A DNA stretch of 64,000 nt from Basidiobolus meristosporus CBS 931.73 (Eukaryota > Fungi > Basidiobolomycota), in contig MCFE01000053.1 in NCBI GenBank assembly GCA_002104905.1, positions 131,721 to 195,720 of the forward strand, written 5' to 3'. Of this stretch, positions 2,781-27,303 are shown piece after piece (positions within the stretch are counted from its first letter, which is position 1; every line of letters begins with the position of its first letter). The notes beneath the pieces were generated by a model. The model was not told where the DNA came from. It made no database searches and saw only the letters and a program-made list of their open reading frames with translations. Made by a program: the position numbers and the translations under genes.

Positions 2781-4707
<1,927 letters not shown>

Positions 4708-5048
4708 AGAAAAGCTATTTTGAGGTGCAAGTAGCAATTACTAAAGATGAAGTGGTGAAACAAGACTGTCATGTACAAAATTTCAAAGCAAATAAGCAGG
4801 AAATTATCCTAATATGTTTAATCATTATAGTGATCATTTCTTAAGTTGCCAACATGAGTTGTACATGTGATCACAGCATCATATGTTGAATACGGTGATG
4901 TCAATGCCGAGGTTCGTGTTCATTCAAATCAAATATTAATTGTGTATTCCAGCCAGAATTGATGAATAGGAGTAATAGGTTTATTGATAACAGCTACGTA
5001 TTTGTTACAACATACCGTTCATTAGGTAATGTTATGTGAGTTGGGAAT

Positions 5049-7755
5049 TTAATTGCCGAAAAAGCGTTTGTATAGACCACTGATACCACTGTGGTCATTG
5101 GTATCGTATGCAGAACCGCCAGATCCACCACCATTACCGCCAGATCCACCACCGTTACCGCCAGATCCACCGCCATTTCCACCAGAGCCGCCACCATTGC
5201 CAGGGCCATATCCTCCGGCACCACCACCGTTACCACCGGATCCGCCACCATTACCGCCGGCTCCTCCTCCGTTTCCAGTATCATAGCCACCAGCACCTCC
5301 TCCGTTTCCACCGGATCCACCGCCATTTCCACCAGATCCTCCACCGTTTCCTGGACCATAACCACCGGCACCTCCTCCATTACCTCCAGACCCTCCTCCA
5401 TTTCCACCGGATCCTCCACCGTTGCCACCAGATCCACCGCCATTTCCAGTGTCATAGGCTCCAGAACCTCCTCCATTGCCACCAGCACCACCTCCGTTTC
5501 CTGGGCCATATCCTCCGGTTCCACCACCGTTACCGCCGGCACCACCTCCGTTGCCAGTATCGTATCCTCCAGCGCCTCCGCCGTTACCACCGGATCCACC
5601 ACCATTGCCACCAGCACCTCCTCCGTTTCCTGGACCATAACCACCGGCACCGCCACCATTGCCGCCTGATCCTCCACCATTACCACCAGATCCGCCACCG
5701 TTTCCAGTGTCATAGGTTCCAGCCCCTCCTCCGTTTCCGCCGCCATTACCACCAGCTCCTCCTCCATTTCCTGGGCCATAACTACCGGCTCCACCCCCAT
5801 TGCCTCCAGAACCTCCACCGTTTCCGGTATCATACGCACCAGAGCCTCCGCCGTTACCACCGGATCCACCGCCGTTGCCACCAGAGCCTCCTCCGTTTCC
5901 TGGGCCGTAGCCACCGGCTCCTCCTCCATTACCACCAGACCCTCCTCCATTACCACCAGATCCTCCGCCGTTTCCAGTATCGTAGGCTCCACCACCGTTT
6001 CCACCGGATCCACCACCGTTGCCACCAGAGCCTCCTCCGTTTCCTGGGCCATAGCCACCGGCACCACCACCATTGCCTCCGGATCCTCCGCCATTTCCTC
6101 CAGATCCTCCGCCGTTTCCAGTATCGTAGGCTCCACCACCGTTTCCACCGGATCCACCACCGTTGCCACCAGAGCCCCCTCCGTTTCCTGGGCCATAGCC
6201 ACCAGCACCGCCACCGTTGCCTCCTGAGCCTCCTCCATTGCCTCCAGAACCACCACCGTTTCCGGTATCATATGCACCAGAGCCTCCGCCGTTACCACCG
6301 GATCCACCGCCGTTACCACCAGAGCCTCCTCCGTTTCCTGGACCGTAGCCACCGGCGCCACCTCCATTACCTCCAGATCCACCGCCGTTACCACCAGAAC
6401 CACCGCCGTTTCCGGTATCATATGCACCAGCGCCACCTCCATTACCACCAGCACCACCACCGTTGCCGCCGGCTCCCCCTCCATTTCCTGGACCGTATCC
6501 TCCAGCGCCACCGCCATTTCCACCGGATCCGCCACCGTTGCCTCCGGATCCGCCGCCATTTCCGGTGTCGTAGGAACCAGCACCACCACCGTGCACCAGC
6601 TCCTCCATTTCCTGGGCCGTATCCACCGGCACCGCCACCATTACCACCGGATCCTCCACCGTTTCCTGGTCCGTACCCACCGGCACCACCGCCATTGCCT
6701 CCTGATCCACCACCATTGCCACCGGATCCACCACCATTGCCACCGGATCCACCACCGTTTCCGGTATCGTAGGCACCAGCACCAGCACCACCACCGTTTC
6801 CGCCGGATCCTCCTCCATTTCCTGGGCCGTATCCGCCAGCGCCGCCACCATTGCCTCCTGATCCACCACCGTTACCACCGGATCCTCCACCATTTCCAGT
6901 GTCGTAGGCACCAGCACCACCACCGTTTCCGCCGGATCCACCGCCGTTGCCACCAGAGCCTCCTCCATTTCCTGGGCCGTATCCGCCAGCGCCGCCACCA
7001 TTGCCACCTGATCCACCACCGTTTCCAGTGTCGTAGGCACCAGCACCGCCACCGTTTCCGCCGGATCCACCACCGTTGCCACCAGAGCCTCCTCCGTTTC
7101 CTGGGCCGTAGCCACCGGCACCGCCGCCATTGCCACCTGATCCGCCACCATTGCCACCGGCTCCACCACCGTTTCCAGTGTCGTAGGCACCAGCACCGCC
7201 ACCGTTTCCGCCGGATCCACCACCGTTGCCACCAGAGCCTCCTCCGTTTCCTGGGCCGTAGCCACCGGCACCGCCGCCATTGCCACCTGATCCACCACCA
7301 TTGCCACCGGCTCCACCACCGTTTCCAGTGTCGTAGGCACCAGCACCGCCACCGTTTCCGCCGGACCCACCGCCGTTGCCACCAGAGCCTCCTCCGTTTC
7401 CTGGGCCATAACCACCGGCACCACCTCCATTTCCTCCAGATCCACCACCGTTGCCACCGGCACCGCCACCATTTCCTCCGGATCCACCTCCGTTACCAGT
7501 GTCATAACCACCAGCACCACCTCCATTACCGCCGGATCCACCTCCATTTCCACCAGAACCTCCGCCATTTCCTGGGCCATATCCTCCAGCACCTCCTCCG
7601 TTCCCTCCGGACCCGCCTCCGTTACCTGCACCCGAGAGATCGCTGGTATCATAGGCACCAACACCGCTTCCAGCACCATGACCGGACCCAGCTCCCGCAC
7701 TTGCTGAGGTAGCAGCGGAAATTAAAAAGATGAGGGCAGGGGCAGAGAATTTCAT
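5049..7755 (-). CDS. Secreted glycine-rich repetitive (silk/structural-like) protein, ~900 aa; net -2 frameshift at ~6591-6594
   Basis: Signal peptide MKFSAPALIFLISAATSASA, then GGNGGG(S/A) repeats punctuated by AYDT and GYGP. The Gly-rich frame switches from ORF 6442..7806 to ORF 5049..7700 at GGTGCACGGTGG (repeat consensus GGTGGCAACGGTGG). C-terminus is AYDTNDHSGISGLYKRFFGN*. Confidence 0.85.
5100..7640. repeat. Coding tandem array: 21-nt unit (GGNGGGS/A) organised into higher-order AYDT/GYGP blocks
   Basis: Direct reading of the sequence. Third codon positions vary between units. Confidence 0.95.
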
Positions 7756-8642
7756 AGTACTGAAAACGCTTAAATATCTAAAGACTCGAAGGTCTGATAC
7801 ATCCAACTGGGAAGATGGCCGAGCTTATATACCTCGAAGGCAATCTTGCCAAATTATGCCAATGAATCCTAATTGAGGTTCCAATTGAAAAATCGCTGAA
7901 TTTTGGAATAGCGCCCTTAAACTTTGGAATTGTTCCCCTTGACCCCTTAATGTATTTGTTTCGGGATACAATATCAGTGTTTACTGATCTGTTCTCAAAG
8001 CCTTAGTATTGAGCTAAAATAATCATGCACTCATGTGTTCCTTACATTATATTGAAACATTTCTATCCCTTAAACCGAGGGAAATCATCAAATAGTACGA
8101 AGCGAGCAATGTATTGCGAATGCGTTGACATTGATGGAAGATTATTCAGTGTATGGGAGATTGATTTATGGATCTGTAAAGCACATTATTCCCTCAAGTA
8201 TGATCCTACATTCCAAAATAGGGAAATGATTCCATTGGGTTCATGACATTATGATAGAGCATGTGTTGGCACTCAAGACATACATCGGCCCACCTGCATA
8301 ATGGTGCCTTGACTTTAGTGCACCCTTTTACACACTCTAGTTGTATTTCGACCATCTTCTATCTGGATTCCCTAAAAGTTAGTCCACATTCGTATCGTAA
8401 ATATTCCGAATGTAGGAAATTAAATCGGTCATCGAGGATGGTCTATTGCCATAGCCTTTAGCAAACAGCAGCTGGGAATTTGGACATTGCGTTACTGCAA
8501 GTTCAGTGCACCAAGAATTCCCCGGTCGCTATATATCGGCCTTATGCCCACTTCTCCTCAAGTCAAACAACCTCGCTTACCACGAGTACTTCAGCCAATA
8601 CCCCAAGTCTCAAAACCCACAACTCCTGATAAACCGGGCAAC

Positions 8643-9341
8643 ATGCATTTCACTCGTGTCTTCTTGTGCGCTACATTCTCTGCTCTGTTCTACTACGCAG
8701 AGGCCAGCCCGTCAATCACCTCCCCTCTGGGAAGCAATTGGCAAGCAGGAACAACGCAGACAATCACCTGGATTGACAACGGGGACAAGGAAGGGATGCC
8801 CGAGTACTTTGACCTCTACCTGATGGCTGGCAAGATGACAGCTCTCCAGCAGGTGGGTGTGATTGCCACCAACATCACCACCAAGCCAGGTCAGTACAAA
8901 TGGGACATCCCGAAGGAAACACCATCAGGAAAGGACTATGCCATTCGTATTGGTGCGCCACCGAGTGTCTCATACAGTCCATATTTCGAGATCTCCGGAG
9001 GTGCCGGCTCAAGACCCGAAAGTGGCCAAACTACTGGCTACTATGGTACGAGCACACCAAACTCGGACACTTCAGCGGGATATAACCCTGACAAACAGTC
9101 ACCCGCGTCACCCAGCCCCGGCCCGAACGGAAAATCAAGCGAGTCACAGCGCAAGAGTATGGGAAGCAGTGTGGACGCATCGACACTCACCATCCTCACC
9201 ATTGGAGCTTTGGCGATTGGATCAACAGTCTCACATTGTAGAGAATCGATGACAGGCGTAGTAGGATCGAATGACGATTCAATTAGAACGGAAAATGATG
9301 TTAGAGAAACCGCGAACCCATTATTTATTGGTCAGATGTAG
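8643..9341 (+). CDS. Ser/Thr-rich GPI-anchored cell-wall protein (Kre9/KNH N-terminal-like domain), copy 1; 1-nt deletion at ~9221 replaces the hydrophobic end with a hydrophilic extension
   Basis: MHFTRVFLCATFSALFYYAEA signal; domain ITSPLGSNWQAGTTQTITW..GQYKWDIP..GKDYAIRIG..SYSPYFEI. GGATCAAC here versus GGAATCAAC in copy 2. Confidence 0.85.
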   Translation: MHFTRVFLCATFSALFYYAEASPSITSPLGSNWQAGTTQTITWIDNGDKEGMPEYFDLYLMAGKMTALQQVGVIATNITTKPGQYKWDIPKETPSGKDYAIRIGAPPSVSYSPYFEISGGAGSRPESGQTTGYYGTSTPNSDTSAGYNPDKQSPASPSPGPNGKSSESQRKSMGSSVDASTLTILTIGALAIGSTVSHCRESMTGVVGSNDDSIRTENDVRETANPLFIGQM

Positions 9342-9720
9342 AAAATCTATATTTAATATATGAATAAAAGCAAAATTCTTACCTATCTTTTCTTTCATAC
9401 AAAATCATTTTGCTGGTAATATGAAGAAATCAAGAATCAACGTTCCTATTGTCCCCTGAGTCCCGTATTTTTATTACACCACTCATGTATCTTTTCATTA
9501 TTGGAGGTTTATAAGTGAACCAGGCGGATGAAATCATCACGGATTAGTAACTTCAAATACGATTATTCGCGAAGTAATTCGTGCATGTTGAGTTTACTGG
9601 AATTGGGGTTTATTATGAAAATTAAAGAACAATTAATAAATACAAATTTCCCATTCTCTAGCACCATTGTCTAATCTAATGGAATCGTCATTCGATCCTG
9701 CTACGCCTGTCATTGATTCT

Positions 9721-10320
9721 CTACAATGTGAGACTGTTGATTCCAATCGCCAAAGCTCCAATGGTGAGGATGGTGAGTGTCGATGCGTCCACACTGCTTC
9801 CCATACTCTTGCGCTGTGACTCGCTTGATTTTCCGTTCGGGCCGGGGCTGGGTGACGCGGGTGACTGTTTGTCAGGGTTATATCCCGCTGAAGTGTCCGA
9901 GTTTGGTGTGCTCGTACCATAGTAGCCAGTAGTTTGGCCACTTTCGGGTCTTGAGCCGGCACCTCCGGAGATCTCGAAATATGGACTGTATGAGACACTC
10001 GGTGGCGCACCAATACGAATGGCATAGTCCTTTCCTGATGGTGTTTCCTTCGGGATGTCCCATTTGTACTGACCTGGCTTGGTGGTGATGTTGGTGGCAA
10101 TCACACCCACCTGCTGAAGAGCTGTCATCTTGCCAGCCATCAGGTAGAGGTCAAAGTACTCGGGCATCCCTTCCTTGTCCCCGTTGTCAATCCAGGTGAT
10201 TGTCTGCGTTGTTCCTGCTTGCCAATTGCTTCCCAGAGGGGAGGTGATTGACGGGCTGGCCTCTGCGTAGTAGAACAGAGCAGAGAATGTAGCGCACAAG
10301 AAGACACGAGTGAAATGCAT
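9721..10320 (-). CDS. Ser/Thr-rich GPI-anchored cell-wall protein, copy 2 (intact GPI signal ..TLTILTIGALAIGINSLTL*)
   Basis: Inverted near-identical copy of 8643.., with signal peptide, domain, S/T/P linker and hydrophobic C-terminus. Confidence 0.9.
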   Translation of the reverse strand: MHFTRVFLCATFSALFYYAEASPSITSPLGSNWQAGTTQTITWIDNGDKEGMPEYFDLYLMAGKMTALQQVGVIATNITTKPGQYKWDIPKETPSGKDYAIRIGAPPSVSYSPYFEISGGAGSRPESGQTTGYYGTSTPNSDTSAGYNPDKQSPASPSPGPNGKSSESQRKSMGSSVDASTLTILTIGALAIGINSLTL

Positions 10321-10841
10321 GTTGCCCGGTTTATCAGGAGTTGTAGGTTTTGAGACTTGGGGTATCGGCTGAAGTACTCGTGGTAAGCGAGGTTGTTTGA
10401 CTTGAGGAGAAGTGGGCACAAGGCCGATATATAGCGACCGGGGAATTCTTGGTGCACTGAACTTGCAGTAACATACACTCAAACTCCTTCTCAACGTCAT
10501 CTGCTGCATACCAAGTGGGTAGATGTATTAATATAAAAGTGGAAATTTTGAACTCCACATGCACTCCTCGCCCACCCACCCCCGCACTCTTGGACATTGC
10601 AGCGGAAACTAAAGCTGGGATAACCATTTTTCCCTACTGACGGTAGCTGGGTATAAGTAACTCTACTATCCTTGAATCGTTTTTGAGTAATTTCATGAAT
10701 GCTGGATGGAATTTAACAAACAGTTCGAACTCCCTGGAATCAATAGAGTATTGTATATAGAAATTGTTTATTTCTTAATAACAACCTAACTACACATAAA
10801 TAAGATCTTCTGCCCAATAATTATTTTCTAAATGATAAGAA

Positions 10842-11417
10842 TTACATGTTCTTGAAATAGAAAGCAAACATACTGGACACCAGTAAATGAGATAGATTGT
10901 GTCTGGTAATAATACCCTCTGATGGTTTGGCATGGGCGCTTGAAATAATACTAGAATTAGGTTTCTGTTCCTCCGCTTTAGTTCCATTACTCTGGGGCTT
11001 TGTATCAGTACCGGAGCTACCATTTCCGGATACGTTGCTATCGGGTCTTGAGCCAGCACCTCCGGAGATCTCGAAATATGGACTGTATGAGACACTCGGT
11101 GGCGCACCAATACGAATGGCATAGTCCTTTCCTGATGGTGTTTCCTTCGGGATGTCCCATTTGTACTGACCTGGCTTGGTGGTGATGTTGGTGGCAATCA
11201 CACCCACCTGCTGAAGAGCTGTCATCTTGCCAGCCATCAGGTAGAGGTCAAAGTACTCGGGCATCCCTTCCTTGTCCCCGTTGTCAATCCAGGTGATTGT
11301 CTGCGTTGTTCCTGCTTGCCAATTACTTCCCAGAGGGGAGGTGATTGATGGGCTGGCCTCTGCGTAGTAGAACAGAGCAGAGAATGTAGCGCACAAGAAG
11401 ACACGGGTGAAATGCAT
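10842..11417 (-). CDS. Ser/Thr-rich GPI-anchored protein, copy 3 (same N-terminal domain, different tail)
   Basis: First ~125 aa identical to copy 2, with 4 synonymous changes seen. Tail is DSNVSGNG..HLLVSSMFAFYFKNM*. Confidence 0.85.
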   Translation of the reverse strand: MHFTRVFLCATFSALFYYAEASPSITSPLGSNWQAGTTQTITWIDNGDKEGMPEYFDLYLMAGKMTALQQVGVIATNITTKPGQYKWDIPKETPSGKDYAIRIGAPPSVSYSPYFEISGGAGSRPDSNVSGNGSSGTDTKPQSNGTKAEEQKPNSSIISSAHAKPSEGIITRHNLSHLLVSSMFAFYFKNM

Positions 11418-12916
11418 ACTGATCAAGTTAGAAACTACAGATATTGAATTCTAGATAAATATGATTGGTGCTCAATAGACTCTTTCTAAGTATCCTTTAT
11501 GTTGATTCGGTAACAGAGGGATAAAGTGCTTGTATGAAAGTCAGTGGCTTGATTCGGAAGGATGGATAAGGGCCCCATATATAGTGATCGGGAAATTACA
11601 GATGCACCAAATCTGCAGTAATGCAATCAACTCTCATCGAATGCAAGATGTCAGTTAAAATCCCCACAGTTATGCGGAAGGATTGCTTTGGACTTTCTCC
11701 GAGGTCCACTCTTATGCAATGGAGGTTTTGTTCCCCAGCCCTCTCAAAACGCTGTGTATCGTAACATCTAATCTTGAAGACTGTGGTGTGATTCGAGTAG
11801 GAATTCATGAACAGGGCATACTAAAGAACACGGTTGCTTCAAAGATCATACAGATACATATAAACGTGTACACCTAGCGGACCTCCGCAGCCATGATCTT
11901 CGCTATAATATCAATCATGAACATGTTTGTGTTTGTGCCACATCCATCAATGTTACTCGACCGGCCTAGTTAGGAATATCATGATACAATTCACTAAAGC
12001 GCATATATAGCAGACTCGATGACAGCTGACCTATATGCAGTAATCCATCCCCAAACCACCTCACATTCATATATCTCGTACTGAGAGTGACTACCAGAGT
12101 GACTATGGCTAAAAGGGAGCTTTTTTATCTGAAACCAAAATATGGGATTTCCAATGAAGAGCCACGAAGCCAGGGTGTATAGTCAACTCGGGTCACCTTT
12201 ACGTAGACAACAATACAATTAAACTCTAAACTCCATTAAGACGGGACCTAGACTCACAACCAGCCATCAGAGAATTCGACCAGATCAAGTGGAACCATGC
12301 GATCTGATGTTTTTAGCAATAACTTTTTATGGCCTTCGTTAGCGATAGCACTAAAGCCAGTCTTGGCATACCTTAATGCCTTGACCACTCAGCCGCCAAC
12401 GCTTGGCTCGTAATGTTCCCAATTATAGACCATTCTTTGTGTATGCAACATGGATGTGCTTTAACCTTGTCAACATGACACATCACAACTTCACCAGTTC
12501 TGTGTGCTTAATCCAAATGGAGTTAAGTGTACTGTACTTCATTGGCGCCTCGGATCTGAGACACAGACATTAGTAAGCTTGAGATTTTTTTATATTGATT
12601 TTATTTCGGTTGGATTATTTGGTCATAGTACACGATTGTAGCTGCATATTGGTAATCTACAATATCGATTGGAACTATCATTTTGTTGGCCCATTCTAGC
12701 CAATATATAGGGTTGGTACTGTAATATTGGGGAAATTTCTGTATTCTACATAAACCCTATGCATGGTGCGCACTTGAGATTCCCAAACCTCCATAAATTT
12801 ATACAATTTCCTGATTTCTCTTTCCGTCTGTTCTGTATTATACTTGTACTTGACCAAAGTGTGCGCTACTTCCTCTCCATATCCACGAGAACCCATAGGT
12901 GCATATTATCATTCTC

Positions 12917-15274
12917 ATGTTGACTTCTCAAGAAGCCAGCTTTTCTAGCGAGGCCAATGCGAATAAGAAATCTAGGACAAGCCGCGCTTGCGATCTCTGC
13001 AGACGAAAAAAAGTAAAGTGCGATGGTCTAAAGCCAACCTGCTCTAATTGCAGCTCTCTCGGCCATGATTGTACCTATCTCGACAAGCCTAAAAAACGGG
13101 GTCCACAAAGTTCCCAACCAAAGGCCCTGGAAGCACGACTTAAACACCTAGAGAGTTTGCTCACTTCGCTTGTCGACAACGGTGGCGCCATGACCAACCA
13201 AATCGCCAATGAATTACGCTCAATTAACGAACACGGCGATTCATCCCCCAACATAGAGTCACCCGAACAAGAAGAATCGGAGGTAACTATCCTTGCAGAG
13301 AAGCCTGGCCGATCCGATGCTAAAACCTTTATTTAGGAGGAACTGAGCGAAGACGAGGATCACAGCGCGGATGAGGATGCCGCGTTGGATGTTGGTGATA
13401 AGCCATGCCCTCAAGATGTATCATATCGGTATGCCGGGAGCAGCTCTGGCATGTACTTACTAAACGACAATATCAAAAGAAGCCAATCTGTACACGATAT
13501 TCGGAAACTTCTGCCGGAAGCATACAATGATATTCCGGATCTTCCGGAGTCATTTCCCCCACCGGAGCTCGGTGAAAAATTGTTGAAGATATATTTTTGT
13601 CGATTTCACCCGTATATGCCAGTGTTCCACGCGAACGGATTTATGAACAAATATCGAGAAGGAAAGGTTCCCCCTATTGTTCTCAACGCCGTCTACGGGC
13701 TCGCATGTATCCACTCTGGAGATCACAATATCTTCCCAGATGTCGAGTCATACACCAAATATGCTCAGATGTTCTTTCTTCGCACCAAAGCATACCTTGA
13801 TCAAGAATACCATTCATCATCCATTCCGGTGATTCAAGCACTCTTTCTGATGACATTCAGCCCTACGTCGGGATGGCTCTTCCTTGGGATGGCTATTCGT
13901 ATGGCTCAAGATCTAGGCCTGCATAGAAATATCGAGTCCCAAAGCATGGACCCCATCGAAAGGGAAGACCGCAGATTGTTGTGGTGGTGCTGCGTTGTTA
14001 TGGACCGTTTTCAGAGTTCGGCTCTCGGCAAGCCGATGTCCATCAGTGAGACAGACTTTGACACAAAACTGCCATTGGAAATAGCAAGCTCGCAGCCCAT
14101 ATTTACCAACTTACCGAACTCCGTCGTTTCCTTACGGTATTTCACTCATCTGATCCGCCTGACTAGTATCATTGGCCGGATAATGAAGGAGGTATACGGG
14201 GTTGATTCTCCCCCGAACGCTACCGGAAAGATCCTTTGGACACTAAATACAGAGATTCGAGACTGGGAGGCAACATTGCCTGCGGAGTTCAAGTATGATT
14301 ACACACGGCCACTGAAGAACAACGTACACTCCATCATGCTCAATACTTTCTGCCAATTCGCCGTCATCTTGCTGAACCGTCCATTCATCCCACGAGCAAA
14401 CAAGTACAAGAAGTCCACAGCAATCAGCCCTGCGCTAAAGGTCTGCTCAAGAGCTGCCAGCATCATGACATTCATAAGTTACCACACTCCCAATGGATAT
14501 AGATTACACGGGGTTATTTTCAAGACATTGTTTACATTTTCATCTTCAATGATCCATCTTATCAGCTCACTGTCAAACGCACCCGACATCGCACAAACCG
14601 GAAGAATCAATTTGTCGTTTAATTTACGCTTATTGCAAGAGTATCAGGAGATCTCATCGGGCTCGGCGCGTTGCCTCAACTTCATGAGAGAGATCGTTCA
14701 GGATCGGAAGGTGCATAAAGTGAACGAGCTTCCGCCAGAGCCGCCCTTGCCTCCACCAGTCCCGATCTCACCTGACCTCAATAACAAAACCCCAAAACGA
14801 AGTGATTCGGGGGCTCTTCTAATCATCCCAGAAAGACATTTTGGCTCTCCGGTAAATCGGAACTCGGGGTCACTTTCGCCGACCAGTATAACAACGCTCA
14901 ATTCGGTCAAGATGGAATCACCATCGGAGCCGTCTCAAACCACCACCCCTACTGTTACCACGTACCCAAACCTGAACCAAATCAATATCGCGGACCCGAT
15001 ATTCCAGTATCCTAATATCTCCCAAACCATGCAAGGCCCAAGGAATCTGTTCTCACCAGAGGCCTACTCCAGCCCGGGTAATTACATGAATTCCCAGCGT
15101 GAGGCAAGTGTGAATTCATCCATGTCCTTGTCCGAGATCTATCAGCAGGATTGTGCACCCGGCCCCTTCATCGGGAATCCGCAGTTCTACAACAACCACC
15201 AAATGGACATCAATATGCAGGAGTGGAATAATTATATTGACCAGTTTTCGAATTTCGCCTCCCCGTCCATGTAA
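12917..15274 (+). CDS. Zn(II)2Cys6 transcription factor with fungal-specific TF (middle homology) domain; intron 13283-13336
   Basis: RACDLCRRKKVKCDGLKPTCSNCSSLGHDCTY binuclear cluster; GWLFLGMAIRMAQDLGLHR..EDRRLLWWCCVVMDR. Exact start uncertain. Confidence 0.9.
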
Positions 15275-15938
15275 TTTTATCATCCCTTTATGCACCCCGC
15301 ATCCTCAGCCGACCCCTAGAACGTGCTGCTTTGTTACCGCACCACGACTGTAATTGTTTTACCGAAGCACTCTATGACCGTTAGCTTCTAGGGATGTCTG
15401 CTTCGCCCCGACCCCGTAAGCAGACGGATACATCCACATTCAGGCCCCTTTGGGCCCGGTCACTGGAATGGAAAGAAGAATAAATTTTTCATTTGATTGT
15501 AAAGATGACGATGTTGTGGAACTGATTTTGTTACGGTCTGTTACGGCATGCAAGTCTTTTTCCTACATTTCCTCATCAATCAATTCTTCTCACATCAGAT
15601 GTGATGCGTCAGGCGCATAGATGTGGAGGTCACGCAATCCCTCCTTTGACAGTCCTGACTCGCGCGAAACCTCGATACGATCAGGATGAGGGTGAGGGTG
15701 AGGGTGAGGAAAGAGGAACACAAGTGAGTTCGACAAAAATAGGACTTTCGGCGTACGATGCCATTACAGGTCAACACTAGCAGCTTTTCAACAAATTGGG
15801 ATGGTCTACACTCCGATCTATCAACGTGGATCAGATGGCTGGAAATAGGTAGGCTGGTGAGCCAATTGTGCCAAATCCCATTCCCCTGAAATGGAAACTG
15901 GTTTGACTATTTCCGGAGGGATGCACCGATACTAAATA

Positions 15939-17411
15939 CTACAAGGTGTAGACGAACTCTGGATGCCTATCCCCAGCCAGCTCCACTCCACCGTAATTCG
16001 TCACCTCCATTTCCACCTGCTCCGGCGTTAATTTGGAACGACGCCTATTCTCCCAAGTGAACACGGCTCTAAGCAAGACTACCAATATTGTTTGCAGGCC
16101 AACATTACACACCGCGATGGTGTGACCATGCACGTATTTAGGTGGATCATAATAAATCTGGCCGCCGATTGCTCCACCTATTGTACCGAATGACACTATG
16201 GCTGCGGACGCCACCGCTCGGCGAGTCAATCCGCCGAAGTTGTTGTTGAACCAGGCTATCTTGATCGAGACATTTGCGTAAACCCCCGCTGTCACGAGGA
16301 CAGCCCCGAAATAGTGAATCCCAACCGCATCGTGATGGATGAGTAGCAGAAACAAGAAGCCTGCAACGGTAACTAGATTGATGAAGACCATATGGAAGCT
16401 ACGCTCTACAAAATGATCCGAACTGAAGCATAGCAGTATGGTCGCAACGAATGCCGCCATGTAGGGAGGAACGGTCATCAATTGCGACTTGACCATGGAC
16501 CAGTGGCCAAGGCCGTTCACTATGGAGGGCAGGAACAGCGTGACACCTTGGAGCGCTATAGTCCCTGTGATGTAGATGAGCATATACGCGTATGTTTTCC
16601 AATCTTTGAACACCGAGCCTACTTGCGCCCAAGACCAAGAATGATCATTTGCCACTCCAGCATCCGCAGCCAACCTGTATATTTCATACGCACGCTCATC
16701 ATCGGTTAGAAACGTGGCAGTCTCGGGGGAGTCCGGAAGAAAGAGCCAGCAAAGGATGGCCAACATCACCGTGGGCAGGCCTTCGATCAAGAAGATGTTC
16801 TGCCAACCGGTGAGCGAGCTTCTGATTTGACTGATTCCGTAGGCAAGTATACCGCCGAACGCCCCTGCCAATGACGAAAACGACCAGAAGAAGCCCAGCC
16901 GTACTGCCTGTTCTTTACGCGGGTACCACAAAGACATGTAATAGATGATCCCAGGGAATAGACCCGCTTCAAAGGCACCCAGAAGGAACCTGCAAACCGC
17001 CAATCCAACGAAATCCTTGATAGCCACCATACAGACGGCAACAGTTCCCCAGCAAAACATCAGGATGGCAATCCATTTGGAGGCCCTCCACCTTCTCAAC
17101 ACAATGTTCGAGGGGAGTTCAAATAGCACGTAACCAAAGAAAAATATCGACAAACACCATTGGTATTGGTGCTGGTCTATGCCAATGTCTTGATCAAGCC
17201 CCGCAAGTTTGGCATTGGCGATATTCGATCTATCAAGGTACGAGAGCAGGTATATGATACACAAAATCGGCAAAAGCGTCAAGTCAAGTTTGCGGATAAG
17301 GCTCCTGTGTACACGTGCATGGTCTTCGTTCTTGCATTGAGCTTCCAAAGTGATGACTTCCTTAATGAACGGGTGTTCCTTCAGACCAGCAGGCTCGGCA
17401 GTATCGCCCAT
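15939..17411 (-). CDS. MFS transporter, Dal5/Tna1-like (allantoate/nicotinate permease family), intronless
   Basis: LIRKLDLTLLPILCIIYLLSYLDRSNIANAK, RFLLGAFEAGLFPG, AGAFGGILAYGI; 12-TM pattern; ends HPEFVYTL. Confidence 0.92.
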   Translation of the reverse strand: MGDTAEPAGLKEHPFIKEVITLEAQCKNEDHARVHRSLIRKLDLTLLPILCIIYLLSYLDRSNIANAKLAGLDQDIGIDQHQYQWCLSIFFFGYVLFELPSNIVLRRWRASKWIAILMFCWGTVAVCMVAIKDFVGLAVCRFLLGAFEAGLFPGIIYYMSLWYPRKEQAVRLGFFWSFSSLAGAFGGILAYGISQIRSSLTGWQNIFLIEGLPTVMLAILCWLFLPDSPETATFLTDDERAYEIYRLAADAGVANDHSWSWAQVGSVFKDWKTYAYMLIYITGTIALQGVTLFLPSIVNGLGHWSMVKSQLMTVPPYMAAFVATILLCFSSDHFVERSFHMVFINLVTVAGFLFLLLIHHDAVGIHYFGAVLVTAGVYANVSIKIAWFNNNFGGLTRRAVASAAIVSFGTIGGAIGGQIYYDPPKYVHGHTIAVCNVGLQTILVVLLRAVFTWENRRRSKLTPEQVEMEVTNYGGVELAGDRHPEFVYTL

Positions 17412-17796
17412 GTGGGAAGTTACAGTTGACGGGATTACCCAAGAGCCAGTCAGCTTGGTATCAAGCAATGCTATGTGACTGAAGTTTTATACTGGCTCTC
17501 CTCCGCATAGGGAATTCCTTCAGAAAGTTCCAAGGATAAATACAATCTCATTAATGCACGAGAACTTCGCCTTTATATACGTCACCATGTATTATTTGCA
17601 TGATGAGAGATTGTGAAAATCCGACAAATAGACACACCATGGCATGGTGGTGGTTTCTTGCCAACATACTGATAATGTGATCATTGCGGAAGTATTGCTG
17701 AGCATCAACAATACCACCAAGTCTATTTATACAAGTTTACAGAGAAGTGTGTACAGGGGTAAAGAACAAATACGAATAAAGGGAGAGGGGGTCTAT

Positions 17797-19205
17797 TCAC
17801 GAAATCCACAGATACTGCGACCTGACTTGAGCTCCAGTAACATTGTGCCTCAAATGGGCAAACTCCAAATGATCCTTGAACACAAGCAACCAGTTCTCCA
17901 TGGATTCTCGGGACTCCGCAACAAGATACATTTTGATTTGAATGTCCATGTTGTCATACAGGTCCCACTCGGGGAATTCTTTTGGATTTACCACTTCCGA
18001 AGAAAACGTCAATTCAAAAGTATTCATCCCCATGTTGATGATATCAGAGCGTGTGAACGATACATTGGTAAGGTGACCCAAATCAATGCTACCGATATGC
18101 GGCTGCTCCTAAAACCAATCTGTTAGGTAGTGCTAGGAATGGATAGAGTAGTGATACTTACCTTGGCGTTTTCGTGTGAATACAATAACAGTTTGCGATC
18201 TTTAAATACCACATAATACTTGCTCCATGTTTGCTGTAAGTGGAAAGTGTTAGAGGTTGATCGTAGAGCATTTGACAAAGCAGGTCCTACCGAGTAGATG
18301 CCTGTCCGGGTGAAGATTTTCAAGTAATCCTCATATATGACGCACTGGAGCGATTCCTTGACTGATCTCTCTTTCAAGTTCCCTTTGTATTCGGGTATCC
18401 ATTGGGGCTTCCCGATCATCATCACACCAATTTCCAAAGTGAGTAATGCGTGGTGCAGAGTGTTATTCTTCTCCAAAGATATGCTGTGTGTAACGAGCCG
18501 CTTCTCAGCTTTTTCAAGCGGAAATCGAAGGTCCAGGGTCCCAATGGTGTACGGGTCCTTTTCACGGCCTTGGATTCTCCGCAGCAGCTTTCGCGGGCTT
18601 AAAATACTGGGCTTCTTTACTAGATTGTGGGAGGCTTGTGCGATTGCAGTGATTTGTATGGTGAAGTCCGACACAACGTCGAATAGGAAGATCTCGTCAA
18701 ATGATAATGTGTACGAAGTGTCTCCCTGGTGTTGTGGTGTGACAGTAGAGGTAGAACATTCTTGGCCACCAACTTTTAATGCAAAGCGTACATCGTAAGA
18801 TTTCTTCACACTATTGTACTGCAATTGGTGAACTCGTACATAAAGTACACCGCATTCTCCAGGTTGAGGAGGTTTGCGAATCGATTTGAACAGGCACGAA
18901 GGTACCGAGGATCGACGCGTTCTCCTTCTAGGGCCGTTGGCGTGTTTCGTATGATTTTCATCCTGCTTCTCGATCTTGGGTTTGGTGCTGATCACCTCTT
19001 TGGATCGATCATACACCCAATCCGAAACGGCAGGTTCCAGGTCAGGACCCCGTTTTCTAGCACAATAAAAACTTTTCGCTCTCTGAGGGGGGACTTGGGC
19101 CGAGGGTATAGTGAATTCGCGTTTGGGTGAAGCCAAAAAGTCCGAGCGCTGTTTCTTTGGGGATGGGCTCATACGCTCATGAATGGTCTTTAGGCGCTTC
19201 AACAT
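17797..19205 (-). CDS. Anillin-related (Bud4/Mid2-like) protein with C2-like and C-terminal PH domain
   Basis: GVLYVRV..SFDEIFLFDV (C2-like); YEDYL..WSKYYVVFKDRKLLLY..YLVAESRESMENWL (PH). The 5' end may include an upstream exon. Confidence 0.55.
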
Positions 19206-19621
19206 CTGAGCAGTGGAATACTAATGTGAGGCCAACGTGCTTGTAACTAGTGGCGAGATAAGATCAGAAACACTTGTAACTAGTGGTGATGGGCTTGGGA
19301 TCGGTTCTTTTCGAACAGGCCAGGGCTTTATATTGGTTGGGTTTGTTTACCTCAAAGGTTTGATGTCCCAGCCCAATTAAGACACGCCCCGATAAAACTC
19401 GCTGTGCGCATGCTGAAATGGACAAAAACAGAGACCTTGGGATGGTAAACAAAGAGAAATTTAGATTCTGCCAAATGATTGGTGCAGCCTCTTGGAGTCA
19501 GTATATTTAGACTTCATTACGCAAATTGATTGGAGTGCCGTCAAAGGGACACTCTTCACTCGACGTGGTTTCAAAGTTGTTTATTAATTAGAACATGCTC
19601 GTTTGTGTTGAGTCCTTTGAC

Positions 19622-20784
19622 TTATCGCTTTTGTGCGATAACATACCAATTGTCCCGGTCGTAGCCGGATTCCAAGATGTCTGCCTCATTGGTACTACAC
19701 ACCAAATCATCGAGCTCGTGCTCACGGAAGAGGTGATAGTATCTTTCAACAAACACACGGGATTTAGTGAACGGCCTAGATGAATTGTTCATGTGCTTGC
19801 ATACCTGTTCAAAACAATCTCCTCCTGATCTTGCTCGGAAATATTGTTCTCTTCACGATACTTCTTGGCTAATTCGGTGGGCAATGCCCAGGGAACATAT
19901 ACGTCCTGATGATTTTGATCAAATTTACGCTTGCCCTGCGAGAATGCATTAGAACATGCCTTCTAAGATCATAGCATTGATCACCGTCTACCTGTTGCTC
20001 CAGTGCCCATACGAAGATCAAGATCTTGCCCGACTTCTTAGTAATTCGGAGGATTTCCTGATTCCTACCGCGTTAGCCTTTGTTGCTTTCCACGTCTGTT
20101 GTTTCAATATACCTTGATGGCTGCTATCCGTCTTTCGGGGGTGGTAAAGTGATGAATCACCGCAATTGATATGGCATAGTCCTATGGGGAGGGGGGTCAA
20201 GGTACAAAACTATATGGGCTTGGTTGACAAGGAACGTTGTGTCATACAAAAAAGATACAAAGCACTCCTTTCTGTAAGGGAGACTAAGATTATCGCAGAC
20301 CATTGCCTCCAGGCCTCGCTCACCACAGATCTTGATCAGATTAGAACTCCTATAAGACAAGACATTAATTTCTCTGGCATACCTAACAGGTGGCGGTCAC
20401 AAAAACCACCCATTCAAACAATATTCCGCTACCTGTCAGAACCAATGGTGAATACATTTTTGTTGACACCGAGATATTTTCCATTGCCACAACCAACATC
20501 AGCACCAACATCTCCGGTGGGAATAGATAGCATGAATTTCTCAACAACAGGCCAAGGCTATCCTCAATAATAACAACAATAGTGGCTGGTTAAAATGACG
20601 CTTATTCTACTGTTTATACTATCTCCAATGAAGATGAGCTATAGAAGCCTGTAATATCAACCTTGTACCGTGTTTGACTAAAGTGGGGAGCGATCACCTC
20701 GTATACATCGTGAACATGTTGCTCCTCCTCTTTTGCAGAGTTTTGACTTAAATCTTGAACGATCGGTATGTTTGGCTTTGGCAT
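19622..20784 (-). CDS. TRM9: tRNA (carboxymethyluridine-34) methyltransferase, Trm9 / ALKBH8 MTase-domain family (multi-exon)
   Basis: Spliced peptide HVHDVYEVIAPHFSQTRYK|PWPVVEKFM..DVGCGNGKY..DYAISIAVIHHFTTPERR..ILIFVWALEQ..QDVYVPW..RYYHLFREHEL..YDRDNWYVIAQKR*. Confidence 0.9.
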
Positions 20785-21180
20785 CTTGTTGGTGTAAGAG
20801 GTCACCCACTAGCTAATATGCGAGTCGTTCTAGAACTTGGTAGTCTAGAATGCAATTCCAATCATTTTTTTTGTCCCAAACCCCTTTTTTTCGAAAGAAA
20901 ATGCACATTCTGCTTATTTCCAACCAATTTAATCAGATTCGAGGGTGGATCTCCTAAGAGTACCTGGATTCGCCGATTCATTGGGATTTCTTGACAGCTG
21001 CATGGCTCTTCCAATGGGTGAACATTTGGACAACATTGGACTTGAGTTCTAGATTCGTTCTAAATGTAAACGCTCCGAGAAATCGATATTTATTTGGTTC
21101 GGCTCATCATATTCAACAATATAGTCGCTTTTCAGAGGTTGTCTTTGGTAGCCTACGCTCCATAGTTTATTTTGTGTGAT

Positions 21181-22479
21181 ATGGTCAGCAATCTAGCCTC
21201 CAACAACCCCACTGCTGGCAAGTTCAGGTCCAAGAGGCAGGAAAAATTGGCCTTGAAGAATGCCCAGAGTAACAAATCTTTTGTTAACCAAACGGCCTTT
21301 CGAACTGCCGAGCGTGCCTATCGTACTCGTATACCACCACCGGACTTTACCAATGTGATCGATTTTGCAAACCTTGAGAGAAATACCCAGGAGAACCTAG
21401 ACAGAATGGTGAAAGTGGAGCTTAAACACGACCTTGCCGCATTGTCACCTCTATTTGGGGAAAGCAAGGGAAACGAGGCTAAAGTGGGTTATACACTAAA
21501 AGACTTCCCTGGTAAACGTCTATTCAACTTGCTCACACTGGCAGTTCTGTATTTTCTAAAACCCTTTTGGCTTGCGACAGGTGTCGTCATTATACCTCGA
21601 GCTTTCTCTCCAGATGCACAAAAGGATATTATCAAGAGCTGCCTTCGTAATCACGCTAAACACCCCAACCTTTCAAACTTGGATGCTCACTACGAAGTAC
21701 CCGATGATGGTATCTGGAGTCTACACGAAAAAGTATTCAAAGGAGAGCTTTCGGAGGATGATCCTAGTTGTGTAGTCCCTCTCAAAGCCAACAAAGACGA
21801 CGACGAGGATATCGGTGCTTACTCAAATACCCCCAAGGATTCTCACCTAGCTGAACTTCCACCCTCACAGTTGATCCGCCGCCTCCGATGGATTACATGC
21901 GGATACCAGTACAATTGGCTGGAGAAGAAGTATGCACTGGACAAACGGTTTCCATTCCCCGAGGACATTAGCGATATCGCCATATCAGTGGCTAAAGCCA
22001 TTGAAGGTGTAGGACACATCGAAGCCGATGGGAGTGGATATGTAAATCGATACGAGGGAGACAAGTACAAACCGGAAGCCGGTGTCATCAACTACTATCA
22101 ATTGAAAGATAGCCTGATGGCACATGTGGATAAGAGCGAGATTAATATGGATGCCCCCTTGATTTCTTTCAGGTAAAACCGGACTGAATGCCTCACACAA
22201 CGTGCCTTCATCTGACTCTCTTACAGTCTAGGGCAGTCTTGCATTTATTTACTGGGTGGGGCAACAAGAGACGTTCCTCCGGTCGCCATCTATCTACGAA
22301 GCGGTGATATGATGGCCATGTGCGGCCCTTGTAGAGCAGCATTTCACGGTGTTCCACGCATTCTTGAAGGCACCCTCCCTGACCACCTGAAGCCCAATCC
22401 TGAGGACCCGGACTGGGATATCTACGCGGACTTTGTGAACGAGGCTCGAATCAACGTGAATATCCGTCAAGTGTTCTGA
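21181..22479 (+). CDS. ALKBH1: AlkB homolog 1-like Fe(II)/2-oxoglutarate dioxygenase
   Basis: LRWITCGYQYNW..PEAGVINYY..LMAHVDKSE..PLISFSLGQSCIFLLGG..LRSGD..FHGVPRI..RINVNIRQV (HxD..H..R motif). Confidence 0.9.
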
Positions 22480-22616
22480 ATGTACATTAAAATATGGGTG
22501 ATGGCCATAGAGTTTTGGAAATAGAATAGAATAGATTATTCAAAATCGTTTAATTAAATTAGGTTGGTTCAAAATTGCTCTCCCCTACTACCAATACTGA
22601 GCAGGTTGGGTGACTA

Positions 22617-23320
22617 TTAATTGATACATGACATCAAAAATGCGGGCATCAGCGCGACCAGAACGGATGCACCGAAGTTCGCGCTAGCGCCGTTGACCGA
22701 GATTGGAACTTTTCCGGCGGTATCTGGGTTACTTGCCACGTTCGCAACAGGAGTGGAGGATGGTGTGGGGGTTGCGTCAGATTTGCTTGTGGCCTTGGAT
22801 ACAGCGGAGGGAACGATAGCTGTTTCCTTAGGTGCTGGAACGTTAGAGGTACTGGTGACCTCGATGTTATTGATGGAAAAAGATTTGTCGTTGGCTTTGG
22901 AACCCTCGACGTCGAAGAAATGGGAGTAGAATACATCGCTACCAGAGCCGATACGAACGGCATACTGAGCACCAGAAGGGATAGTGTTGGGAACGGTCCA
23001 TTGATATGGACCCGATTTGTTGGTAAGTCCTTTTGCCACAACACTGACCTCCTGTAAATTGTCAGCTTTACCAGACATTAAAGTGATGTCGAACTTGGTG
23101 GGGGTGGTAGTTTGATTATTCTCTAACCTGTGATGATGACACTTAACGTACTGGACTGGTTTCATTGATCTGAGTGAATGACTTACCAATTAATAGTGAC
23201 CTTGGTCCCAGATACCCACTTGGTTCCATCAATTGGCTGGGTAATGTAAAAGCCACCTAGGGCGGAACTGGCCAAAAAAGCGACAGAACTTAGGAAAGTG
23301 AGACCGTTCAGGAGAAGCAT
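22617..23320 (-). CDS. Ser/Thr-rich GPI-anchored protein (Kre9/KNH-N-like), paralog 4, one intron
   Basis: MLLLNGLTFLSSVAFLASSALG signal; GTKWVSGTKVTINW|..GPYQWTVP..QYAVRIG..YSHFFDV; hydrophobic end ..VLVALMPAFLMSCIN*. Confidence 0.85.
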
Positions 23321-24197
23321 TAAAGAAATAAGAAGATAAGCTTAATGGCACTGGTTACGTCGCATGAGGATTATATATAGATCTTCGAAAGGCCAATCCT
23401 TGAAAACAAACCATAAATGTAGCGTAGCGAGTACAAGAAGAATTCTAGAGTAATGTATTTCATCATCTTTCAATAAGCATTTGACCTTTTTGATGTGGCT
23501 GGCAGCTCGAATCAGCCCTTACATTAATTATACAGTAAGTGCCCAGCATAAAGTCCACTTTCGTCCCTCCCAGATGACGGCCATTAACATGTACAACATA
23601 AGCATTTGGCTACTTGTTACAGACAACCATTGGCTCACCATGTCATGGTGTATTATGAGTTGTGTACCGGTGGCCACCAATGATGGCCATTTTCTCTAAT
23701 TAAATGTATCTATCCCTTGATTGTTGCATCTGGCTTGAGAATTCGGCATGGAGTCTAATTTAAACCAAATTTATGCTTGATATGAACCTTCGGGCTTAGA
23801 TTACTGGACTTGATGGTTACCAGGGACCGTCCAGATGGAATCGAAATAATTTGCTTCAATCGATTATGTTGAAACCGAAGTACCAAAAACAGTTTAGTGA
23901 AAAGGGAAAACTCGTTATTACAAGTAACGAATTCAAATCCGTACCAAAATTTGTACATAATTAAATTTGTACCATGCAATTAAGCTAGTACTATTTCATA
24001 ACAACTTACTTGATACCGTATCACAGTAGTTTGTTATGGAAAGGTTGGACATGGGAGATGACTACGAGATAAATATCTGAATCAGTCAGTACGCTACACA
24101 CATGTATTTTCGAGGAGCTGACAGTATAAAACTAAAGCGATATCAACACGAAGTACTCAGCTTCCTCTCCAACATAGCCTAGATTCCTTTCAACACA

Positions 24198-25013
24198 ATG
24201 TTCTCAAAGACCCTCGCATCTGTCGCCGCTGTCGCTTTGTTGGCCGCCTCTGCCAGCGCTGATTACTCCATCGTTGAGCCTGTCGAAGGTACCAAGTGGG
24301 TTGCTGGAGAGACTGTTACCATCAGATGGTGAGTACATGACCACTATTGCATGAGCTGAAGCATTATTGTTTTCCATCACATTCTAGTTCATCATCCTAA
24401 CATATCTTTTATCAGGGTTGAGGTTGCTGGAACTCCTACCCCCGAGAAACTCAGCCTTGCCTTGATGGTCGGTGAGCCCACCCAACTTCAAGTCAGCCAA
24501 GTTATTGCCGATGTTGACTCCAAGGCCGGATCCTACAAGTGGACTGTTCCCAGCACTGTCCAACCCAGTGCTCAATACGCTGTCCGTGCCGGTAGCGGTG
24601 ATGCCGTCAAGTACTCTCACTACTTCGATGTTGAGGGTGACAATGTCAGTGTTGCTGCTGTCCAATCCTCTACTGATTCCGCTGTTGAGTCATCCACTCC
24701 CAGCAGTACCGCAGCCATCCCAGTTGCTTCCAGCAACGCTACTTCAGTAGCCTCTTCTGCTACTCCTGCTTCCAACTCCACTACCATTGCCAGCACCAGC
24801 CTTGTTAGCCCTACCTCTAGCATCGCCTCGTCTATCACTTCTTCCGGTGCTTCTTCCAAGCCCACCAGTGCCGCCACTAGCGCTCCAAGCAAGGTTAGCT
24901 CACAAGCCACTCCTTCTCCCAGCAAGACCCCCGCCAGTGCTGGTAGCAACCTTGCCATCTCCGCCATCTCTGCATTGATCCCCGCTGCCTTGGTTGCTTA
25001 CATGCGCCAATAG
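24198..25013 (+). CDS. Ser/Thr-rich GPI-anchored protein, paralog 5 (intact), one intron
   Basis: MFSKTLASVAAVALLAASASA signal; GTKWVAGETVTIRW|..GSYKWTVP..QYAVRAG..YSHYFDV; S/T tail; ..AISALIPAALVAYMRQ*. Confidence 0.9.
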
Positions 25014-25746
25014 AGGGAATCTGGCCAACATTATAGTAGTAGTAGTTTGCGCAATGGCATCAGCAATCAGTGTTCATCGCAGTTGGCAAGCCATCAAAAG
25101 CATAATAATAATGTATTAGCTCGCATGAATCAGAGTATTCGTATTATTATAATTATTAATCAGCCCTATACCCAATAAAATGAAACTTGTTCAGTTGGTA
25201 CTACTGTGTAGCAACAACGACAAGAAGCAAGAATCACCAAGCGTTTATTCGATTATATTGGATATTGCGAATTCCAGCCTTTATGGCCGAATGTGTTCGC
25301 CATTCGAATGGTGGATGGAATTCCGATAGTAACGCCGAGGTCGTTGCACCTGGACAAATAGTTGGCCGGTTAGGCATTGTCATACAGGGCATTGCGGGAT
25401 TTTTGTTTAGGTCGAAGTCGGAGATATTCCTGGCACGATATCCCGGCTCCGGTTGGGTGAAGATTGGCTCTGGGTGGTGGGAAGGTATCCGATTTTCGCT
25501 TGGTTAAAGATTATCAGAAAATTTGACTTCATCATACTTGCTACTCAGTAGGACCCCAGCTGGAGAGGTTTTATTATAACGGGTATAGGGCTGATTAATA
25601 ATTATAATAATACGAATACTCTGATTCATGCGAGCTAATACATTATTATTATGCTTTTGATGGCTTGCCAACTGCGATGAACACTGATTGCTGATGCCAT
25701 TGCGCAAACTACTACTACTACTACTATAATGTTGGCCAGATTCCCT

Positions 25747-26586
25747 CTATTGGCGCATGTAAGCAACCAAGGCAGCGGGGATCAATGCAGAGATGGCGGA
25801 GATGGCAAGGTTGCTACCAGCACTGGCGGGGGTCTTGCTGGGAGAAGGAGTGGCTGGTGGGCTAACCTTGCTTGGAGCGCTAGTGGCGGCACTGGTGGGC
25901 TTGGAAGAAGCACCGGAAGAAATGATAGACGAGGCGATGCTAGAGGTAGGGCTAACAAGGCTGGTGCTGGCGATGGTAGTGGAGTTGGAAGCAGGAGTAG
26001 CAGAAGAGGCTACTGAAGTAGCATTGCTAGAGGCAATTGGGGTAACCAAGGTACCAGATTTGCTAGCATTGGTGGCTACAGTTCAGTGGTTTGGGAACCG
26101 CTAGCAGATGAGCTAGCTCCAGGGACTTTGCCACCCTCAACATCGAAGTAGTGAGAGTACTTGACGGCATCACCGGTACCAGCACGGACAGCGTATTGAG
26201 CACCGGGTTGGACAGTGCTGGGAACAGTCCACTTGTAGGATCCGGCCTTGGAGTCAACATCGGCAATAACTTGGCTGACTTGAAGTCGGGTTGCCTCACC
26301 AGCCATCAAGGCAAGGCTGAGTTTCTCGGGGGTAGGAGTTCCAGGAATCTCAATCCTATTCAAAGACATGTTAGAATAACGTACCGTATGAGATGGAACA
26401 ACAGTGATAGAAAACAATAATGCTTCAGCTCATGCAATAGTGGTCATGTACTCACCATCTGATGGTAACAGTCTCTCCAGCAACCCACTTGGTACCTTCG
26501 ACAGGCTCAACGATGGAGTAATCAGCGCTGGCAGAGGCGGCCAACAAAGCGACAGCGGCGACAGATGCGAGGGTCTTTGAGAACAT
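25747..26586 (-). CDS. Ser/Thr-rich GPI-anchored protein, paralog 6; 1-nt frameshift at ~26082 gives a stop at 26076 just after the domain
   Basis: Inverted copy of 24198... Reads ..GSQTTE-L* while the S/T tail and GPI signal continue in another frame (ORF 25747..26049). Confidence 0.8.
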
Positions 26587-27303
26587 TGTGTTGAAAGGAA
26601 TCTAGGCTATGTTGGAGAGGAAGCTGAGTACTTCGTGTTGATATCGCTTTAGTTTTATACTGTCAGCTCCTCGGAAATACGTGTATATTGCATGCATTCG
26701 GATCAACCAAAAATCCCAAGGAAAATACCGCTCAACGCAAAATAAGGAATGGGGCTGTGGTACGAATTTTATGAATCCGAATAAACAAGCGCTTGGGGTA
26801 GCACAATCCTCAGCAAATACAACAATTGATTCGAAGGCCCACCATTATAAGAAATGATTAATCCTGTGTTTTAGTTACTGAGGCCAACTGCAGAAGGAAG
26901 TTTACTCGTAATACACAATATCATTGCCAAGTATTTTCAGGAACCGGTCAGGTATAGATTCACAAAAATAGTAGGCTGTTGGCCGTTTTCGAGGGGAGAC
27001 CAAATTGGGAAGTGGGATCATTTTATATTTCTTCTATTCCAAGTAATATATATTCCAACCAGTATCATGCCGATGCACCTAAAGGAATTGGCACTAAGCA
27101 AGCTTATCTCGCGCGTTTTTCGGACTTGATTAATGGATTTCTATATGCTTGTGACACTGGGTGGATTCTGACCACTCGTGGTTCACAATCGATCGTTTAT
27201 GAAGTTACTAACTATGATAGGTCACTCTGGATTTTTTTGATTGGCATCTCGCATAGACTATACTACTGGGCATGTTACGCATCATCATTCTGTGATGTTG
27301 AAG

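Follow-up and report, generated by a model that had tools for sequence, protein, structure and literature searches.

The stretch of Basidiobolus meristosporus CBS 931.73 DNA discussed here is 64,000 nt of contig MCFE01000053.1 (assembly GCA_002104905.1, positions 131,721 to 195,720 of the forward strand; hereafter the window, with positions counted from its first nucleotide). It raises the question of why two clusters of related genes for putative cell-surface proteins of the Kre9_KNH family should each be built around a mirror-image pair. The original prediction saw in these pairs a surface-diversification system, in which inverted pairing drives the shuffling of domain and tail modules. We think it likely that what we have are two gene-sized palindromes of ordinary secreted Ser/Thr-rich Kre9_KNH cell-wall glycoprotein genes, and that the copies are alike through gene conversion. 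The repeats, the family, the mosaic of identity and the conversion of one neighbouring gene are observed directly.

The gene family and its arrangement

There are six genes with a Kre9_KNH domain (PF10342) in the window, in two clusters that we call A and B, as had been predicted. All six pass the Pfam gathering cut-off of 24.6 with 28.5-61.3 bits (E values 3e-6 to 1.5e-16), the lower scores coming from exon-2-only queries as spliced genes were searched exon by exon, and tblastn finds exactly six copies of the domain in the 64 kb.

Cluster A comprises A1 (8643..9341, + strand, Pfam E=2e-16), A2 (9721..10320, - strand, E=1.5e-16) and A3 (10842..11417, - strand), all three without introns. In cluster B, the genes B1 (22617..23320, - strand), B2 (24198..25013, + strand) and B3 (25747..26586, - strand) are identical to the annotated genes K493DRAFT_311976, K493DRAFT_311977 and K493DRAFT_311978 respectively. 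Each has one intron, placed after a conserved Trp that closes exon 1, and in B2, which encodes 242 amino acids (aa), the intron is at 24329-24415. The pairs A1/A2 and B2/B3 are tail-to-tail, A2/A3 is direct and B1/B2 is head-to-head, so that each cluster does consist of one tail-to-tail inverted pair and a third relative.

No similarity at the DNA level was found between clusters A and B, and the only link is 42-46% protein identity in the domain. With no shared DNA, and with an intron in the B genes but not in the A genes, a single larger duplication as the source of both clusters is rejected.

Gene conversion into A3

Gene conversion is the best-supported process at this locus and the evidence for it is good. 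In the case of A3 the tract can be delimited: it covers 11038..11417 (- strand), a stretch of 380 nt that opens with the ATG and closes with the domain, and so takes in the putative signal peptide as well. It is 99% identical to A1 and A2, and has sharp borders. The domains of A1, A2 and A3 are identical as proteins and have just six variable sites, all at third codon positions. Within the genome the synonymous divergence (dS) of the A domain is 0.012-0.038 (0.038 for A3 against A2), whereas against the orthologue in Basidiobolus ranarum it is 1.8-2.0, with a non-synonymous divergence (dN) of 0.09 and a dN/dS of about 0.05.

The tail of A3 has a different affinity. It aligns with that of B. 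ranarum K7432_006911 (P0003, in the B. ranarum region we call L001), and the same Zn2Cys6 and major facilitator superfamily (MFS) genes flank both, so that in tail and position A3 and K7432_006911 are orthologous and A3 is an old gene that predates the species split. Beyond the tract A3 and A2 have only a core-promoter motif in common, with about 70% identity, and this motif is also present in B. ranarum; their tails cannot be aligned. A tract that ends where homology runs out is the mark of ectopic conversion between existing paralogues. GC-biased conversion was also considered. The GC content at third codon positions is 0.61 in the converted domain and 0.39 in A3's own tail, which is not decisive as the B. 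ranarum orthologue has a similar contrast (0.51 and 0.32).

The two palindromes

The left arm of palindrome A (8491..9308, + strand, 818 nt) opens with the core-promoter motif and TATA box, takes in A1 and stops about 88 nt beyond a 1-nt indel, and the right arm (9654..10472, - strand) is its inverted repeat. Between them is a unique, AT-rich spacer of 345 nt (9309..9653, 31% GC). The left arm of palindrome B (24093..25198, + strand) starts about 35 nt before the TATA box and reaches as far as the poly(A)-signal region, and the inverted right arm is at 25556..26691 (- strand), both being about 1.1 kb; the spacer (25199..25555) is again unique, of 357 nt, and includes an open reading frame (ORF) with no Pfam match. 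The arm lengths first proposed, about 0.8 and 1.07 kb, hold well, but the spacers had been put at about 385 and 407 bp, longer than those we measure. No similarity was found between the two spacers or from either to the rest of the window, the fold of the pair A spacer is not unusual (z = -0.6), and no Rfam family was found in or between the clusters.

In both palindromes homology begins tens of nt upstream of the TATA box and stops in the 3' untranslated region (UTR), which indicates that each arm is one whole transcription unit. Poly(A)-signal motifs lie at the inner ends of the arms, and in pair B homology stops beside one. The DNA upstream of the arms differs between the two copies. A conserved TATA-containing core promoter is found upstream of A1-A3 and of B2 and B3, and for the copies in the two pairs it lies inside the arm or at its edge; B1 is a complete annotated gene.

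The core-promoter motif consists of ACTGCAA, about 6 nt, TGCAC, about 8 nt, TYCCCG, 4 nt and CTATATAT, and occurs at 8492-8540 (A1), 10423-10471 (A2) and 11575-11625 (A3), and in B. ranarum at 9755-9858 and 10860-10963 of L001. It may be a binding site common to the subfamily. The gene for a Zn2Cys6 factor lies nearby and is syntenic in B. meristosporus and B. ranarum.

The two pairs differ in how identity is distributed. The arms of pair A are 99.7% identical over the first 731 nt (to 9221) and 90% over the last 88 nt, with only one substitution in the coding region, which is synonymous, and a 1-nt indel at 9221/9742, the base at 9221 being deleted in A1 relative to A2. Identity falls exactly at this indel, which argues that the indel is real. 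In pair B arm identity is a mosaic that ranges from 54 to 100%.

The mosaic in pair B

Identity between B2 and B3 is 100% over a block of 242 nt that takes in the 5'UTR, exon 1 and the first half of the intron, and 54-63% over the 3' half of that intron. The domain exon is 95% identical, the linker about 67% with indels, the Ser/Thr tail 98%, and the 3'UTR 95-100%, with a difference, as had been noted, in the length of a (TAG)n microsatellite. The 70 difference events in 1148 aligned columns are clustered (variance/mean 4.4 in 50-column bins), and not one of 20,000 shuffles gave an identical run as long as the longest one observed, which is 264 nt (P<5e-5). The patchiness that had been noted is thus real and not random. 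As the 100% block spans UTR and intron, constraint on the protein is no explanation for it. In the unconverted half of the intron B2 and B3 are 63% identical to each other, and 57-69% to the B. ranarum orthologue, although only about 35 sites are available for the comparison. The claim that conversion between copies yields mosaics of modules is well supported, in the case of A3 by the contrast of domain and tail and in the case of B2 and B3 by these segments.

The domains of B2 and B3 have 89% protein identity and a dS of 0.06. Their dN/dS is about 0.85, from the small number of 8 non-synonymous and 3 synonymous changes.

Protein ends and frame breaks

The N-termini, read directly from the translations, are hydrophobic for about 20 residues and end in small residues, and the stalks after the domain have a Ser+Thr fraction of 0.29-0.47. 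At the C-terminus the mean hydropathy is 1.3-1.9 for A2, B1, B2 and the tail frame of B3, and is weak, at 0.66, for A3. The C-terminus of A1 is hydrophilic, as the 1-nt indel swaps the hydrophobic end for a 38-aa extension, and there are three differing C-termini behind the one domain in cluster A. B3 has exon 1 and tail as in B2, but its frame is broken after the domain, near 26076-26098, and the tail lies beyond this break.

A tail of the glycosylphosphatidylinositol (GPI) type is plainly kept in only four of the six genes, so that the description of all six as GPI proteins may hold for these four but not for A1 and B3, which appear to have lost the anchor signal. The family (PMC12091936) and the hydropathy suggest GPI anchoring and a role in the cell wall.

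The public model for B3 (K493DRAFT_311978) spans the break with a 23-nt GT..AG “intron” at 26076-26098 (- strand). This is too short for a fungal intron, and the model probably hides a frameshift. The frame would equally be restored by an alternative of 59 nt that has GTGGCA as a weak donor.

Comparison with Basidiobolus ranarum

The nearest other genome is that of B. ranarum AG-B5 (GCA_040143965.1), and its coding DNA is only 67-78% identical to that of the window, with dS of about 1.5-2.0. Past the A3 orthologue the contig of L001 goes on for 387 nt, and its end falls within a further copy of the promoter core, in direct orientation. Set against B. meristosporus, this end is about 95 nt beyond the start of the arm of palindrome A. 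The second direct core indicates that the tandem order of A3 then A2 is ancestral. The B. ranarum orthologue of B2 and B3 (P0010) is alone on a contig of 1,174 nt (JASJQH010006137.1), the ends of which are within about 50 nt of the arm borders in B. meristosporus, and this is how a collapsed two-copy repeat would look. The other family loci of this assembly are in mid-contig: solo genes in L005 and L008, and an array of four direct genes in L007. No annotated B. ranarum protein with the A1/A2 tail was found in the assembly. We would give about an even chance, or somewhat better, to both palindromes being older than the split of the two species.

The L007 array (3823-9112 of the region, on JASJQH010000027.1) consists of four tandem Kre9_KNH genes, all in the same orientation. 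Its genes 3 and 4 have 89% identity over a stretch that starts precisely at the ATG and stops with the domain. Their tails and promoters are unrelated, and this may be a second case of conversion limited to the domain.

Within B. ranarum, L001 is paralogous to L002, at 72-78% identity. Both regions have MFS, Zn2Cys6 and Kre9_KNH genes, and L001 has an extra NicO transporter gene between the Zn2Cys6 and MFS genes. In L002 (10400-10487, on JASJQH010000257.1) the gene K7432_006068 (P0004) stops directly after the domain, and past the stop the frame continues as a Ser/Thr-rich stalk; it looks like a copy with a nonsense mutation.

Beyond the window one further member was found in B. meristosporus, a solo gene with no repeat around it. 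The family profile search scored the best 8000 candidates and missed three of the L007 array genes, and the count for B. meristosporus is at least seven. The expectation that family members elsewhere would also be in inverted pairs is not borne out, as we have this one solo gene in B. meristosporus, and two solo genes and the direct array in B. ranarum. There are about seven adjacent pairs of paralogues, two of them tail-to-tail, one head-to-head and four direct. Two of about seven is no striking excess, and the recurrence of the architecture, which the original prediction took as its main signal, is not a strong statistical one.

Interpretation and alternative explanations

Our preferred explanation is as follows. 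Each palindrome would have arisen as an inverted duplication of one transcription unit, with about 350 nt of unique DNA between the copies. Repeated intrachromosomal gene conversion would then copy stretches from arm to arm, and in cluster A would also write into the direct neighbour A3, so that the copies evolve in concert wherever they can still be aligned. Whatever is not converted would drift, and this applies to half an intron and the low-complexity linkers as well as to the 3' ends and the regulatory DNA upstream. The outcome would be one surface domain under promoters that are regulated differently, on proteins whose C-terminal ends vary somewhat. Conversion would on this explanation be a passive by-product of close and highly similar repeats, and not a dedicated machine for variation. 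A crossover between arms would exchange 3' modules between promoters, so that the mechanics allow a limited amount of shuffling, but there is no sign of its use or of selection for it.

Several points weigh against this explanation. The frame breaks in A1, B3 and a silk-like gene beside cluster A could be assembly errors in repeated DNA, in which case the reading of the tails would change. The dN/dS of about 0.85 for B2 and B3 could reflect diversifying selection and not decay of B3; we find that decay fits better because B3 also has the frame break, but the counts are too small to decide. The evidence for palindromes in B. ranarum is indirect, coming from contig ends in a fragmented assembly. 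Finally the census, drawn from the best 8000 candidates, is incomplete and there may be other inverted pairs in B. meristosporus.

One alternative has the pairs as young, independent local duplications with no meaningful conversion, the patchiness being due to uneven constraint and slippage in the linkers. Local duplication is indeed common in the family, as in L007, and Ser/Thr-rich linkers do evolve fast by slippage. However A3, with tail, position and promoter core orthologous to those in B. ranarum, has a domain dS of only 0.04 to its neighbours, the 100% blocks in pair B include UTR and intron next to an intron half with only 63% identity, and the B. ranarum contigs break at the same borders. 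We consider this explanation unlikely. About as unlikely, or marginally more so, is a proposal that goes the other way on age, in which both one-gene palindromes are ancient, predating the split of the two species (dS above 1.5), and are kept by selection; crossovers between the arms would flip the spacer and swap the C-terminal anchor modules, giving a reversible two-state switch between anchored and released protein. On this proposal the A and B subfamilies perhaps inherited their palindromes from a single one that existed before they separated, as the spacers, both about 350 nt long, are alike in size.

We hold it improbable that palindromic pairing is a selected mechanism for shuffling domain, linker and tail modules to vary the surface, as in the arrays used for antigenic variation. 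A crossover of inverted arms would invert the spacer and exchange 3' modules between promoters, module-wise mosaics do exist, with cluster A having its three C-termini behind one domain, the dN/dS of the B2/B3 domain is about 0.85, and Basidiobolus inhabits vertebrate guts. It is the direction of change that tells against diversification: conversion makes the copies alike, and the exposed domain is homogenised, being identical as protein in A1-A3, with exon 1 identical in B2 and B3 and the tails 98-100% identical. A cluster offers just two or three states, and each gene in it is driven by a promoter of its own. Between 4.2 and 27.5 kb no recombinase, reverse transcriptase or invertase came up when the larger ORFs were scanned with Pfam, and there is no silent donor archive, with six genes here and only a handful more members among the best 8000 candidates. 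The members found elsewhere stand alone or in a direct array, and a direct pair in B. ranarum also has like domains with different tails, so that a palindrome is not needed for this pattern.

The geometry of convergent, near-identical transcription units about 350 nt apart also brings to mind natural hairpin-RNA loci, in which transcription through the spacer would give a double-stranded stem of 0.8-1.1 kb and RNA interference would tune the subfamily, A3 included. This is pure inference from the geometry, and it is very improbable in view of the poly(A)-signal motifs at the inner arm ends, the lack of any special fold in the pair A spacer, and the purifying selection on arm coding sequence between species (dN/dS about 0.05). 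Hardly credible at all is that the palindromes are products of assembly, whether from a mis-join or from a chimeric read that folds back on itself. The genome was assembled from long reads or as a hybrid (10.1101/2025.03.31.646025) and there are three frame breaks in repeated genes of the region, but the spacers are unique, the outer flanks differ, and between the arms there are structured substitutions and indels, a linker that has been replaced and a microsatellite of unequal length. Moreover the public annotation has both B genes, and the breaks in the assembly of another species, made independently, fall at the same borders. The original prediction had rejected such an artefact on much the same grounds, and we agree.

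Neighbouring genes and other repeats

Cluster A is divergent from a gene for a silk-like secreted protein with Gly/Asn/Tyr repeats (7755..5049, - strand), as had been seen, with 887 nt from ATG to ATG. Its translations have an N-terminus like a signal peptide and repeats of the types GGNGGGS, GYGPGN and AYDTGN, with no Pfam match. It is read in two long ORFs, the first from 7755 to about 6600 and the second from about 6590 to 5049. GGNGGGS-type repeats occur in each, and there is a single frame change within the repeats, near 6590-6600 (within 6560-6620, minus strand). The frameshift may be real, or else the consensus may be wrong in this very repetitive, GC-rich DNA.

The Pfam scan of the larger ORFs also gave the neighbours of the clusters as a Zn2Cys6 factor, an MFS transporter and a 2-oxoglutarate oxygenase, with a weak anillin match below Pfam's cut-off. 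The Zn2Cys6 fungal-specific transcription factor (12899-15274, + strand) is in two ORFs that are presumably joined by an intron, and it and the MFS gene (15939-17468, - strand) are beside A3.

There are no further gene palindromes in the window, where the other inverted repeats are only short dispersed, transposon-like copies at 46-61 kb. These copies (46191-46522, 52370-52612, 56218-56953 and 60959-61290), in the AT-rich right end of the window, are of 88-243 nt and 79-97% identical, and occur in both orientations, one pair forming a close hairpin at 56411-56740. A small transposon is their probable source, the copies being fragments of it.

Relation to known systems

For those annotating Basidiobolus genomes, the practical points are that short-read assemblies break or collapse at palindrome loci, that trees of the paralogues will falsely mimic recent species-specific duplications, and that one public gene model (K493DRAFT_311978) probably masks a frame break with a 23-nt intron.

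The proteins themselves resemble GPI-anchored Kre9_KNH proteins such as SsGSP1 of Sclerotinia sclerotiorum, which has 212 aa, a Kre9_KNH domain at residues 22-113 and a predicted GPI site (PMC12091936). The likeness is in a length of about 190-240 aa, one N-terminal Ig-like domain and a Ser/Thr stalk, with a putative signal peptide and, in most, a hydrophobic C-terminus, and such proteins are distant relatives of yeast Kre9/Knh1. The Basidiobolus proteins have less than 40% identity to members from outside the genus among the best 8000 candidates.

With regard to the arrangement, the palindromes of mammalian sex chromosomes (PMC8327919, PMC8600007, bioRxiv 10.1101/800185) also have near-identical inverted arms with genes in them and a unique, diverging spacer. 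Concerted evolution of the arms and probable conservation between species, which we infer for Basidiobolus, are further points of likeness. The Basidiobolus arms are far smaller, at about 1 kb with one gene where the mammalian ones exceed 10 kb, neither sex linkage nor a lack of recombination is known for the locus, and pair B is a mosaic and not uniformly above 99% identical. It is nevertheless the case that two miniature palindromes behave as the much larger mammalian ones do.

Trypanosome VSG, Pneumocystis MSG, Borrelia vls and the bacterial shufflons are programmed systems for surface variation. Like them, the clusters discussed here have genes for surface proteins, related copies that recombine and module-wise mosaics. 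Unlike them, they have no silent archive, single expression site or hypervariable exposed region, and recombination makes the copies alike. The locus thus reveals no new mechanism of surface variation, and belongs with paralogues in concerted evolution, which is a known kind of system.

Concerted evolution of tandem paralogues by ectopic gene conversion is a general phenomenon, and the A3 tract, with 380 nt bounded by homology, 99% identity and flanks orthologous to those of another species, has no essential difference from it and is close to a textbook case. The two clusters are a clean and small example of such evolution in an early-diverging fungus, in which the limits of the tract are the start codon and the end of the domain.

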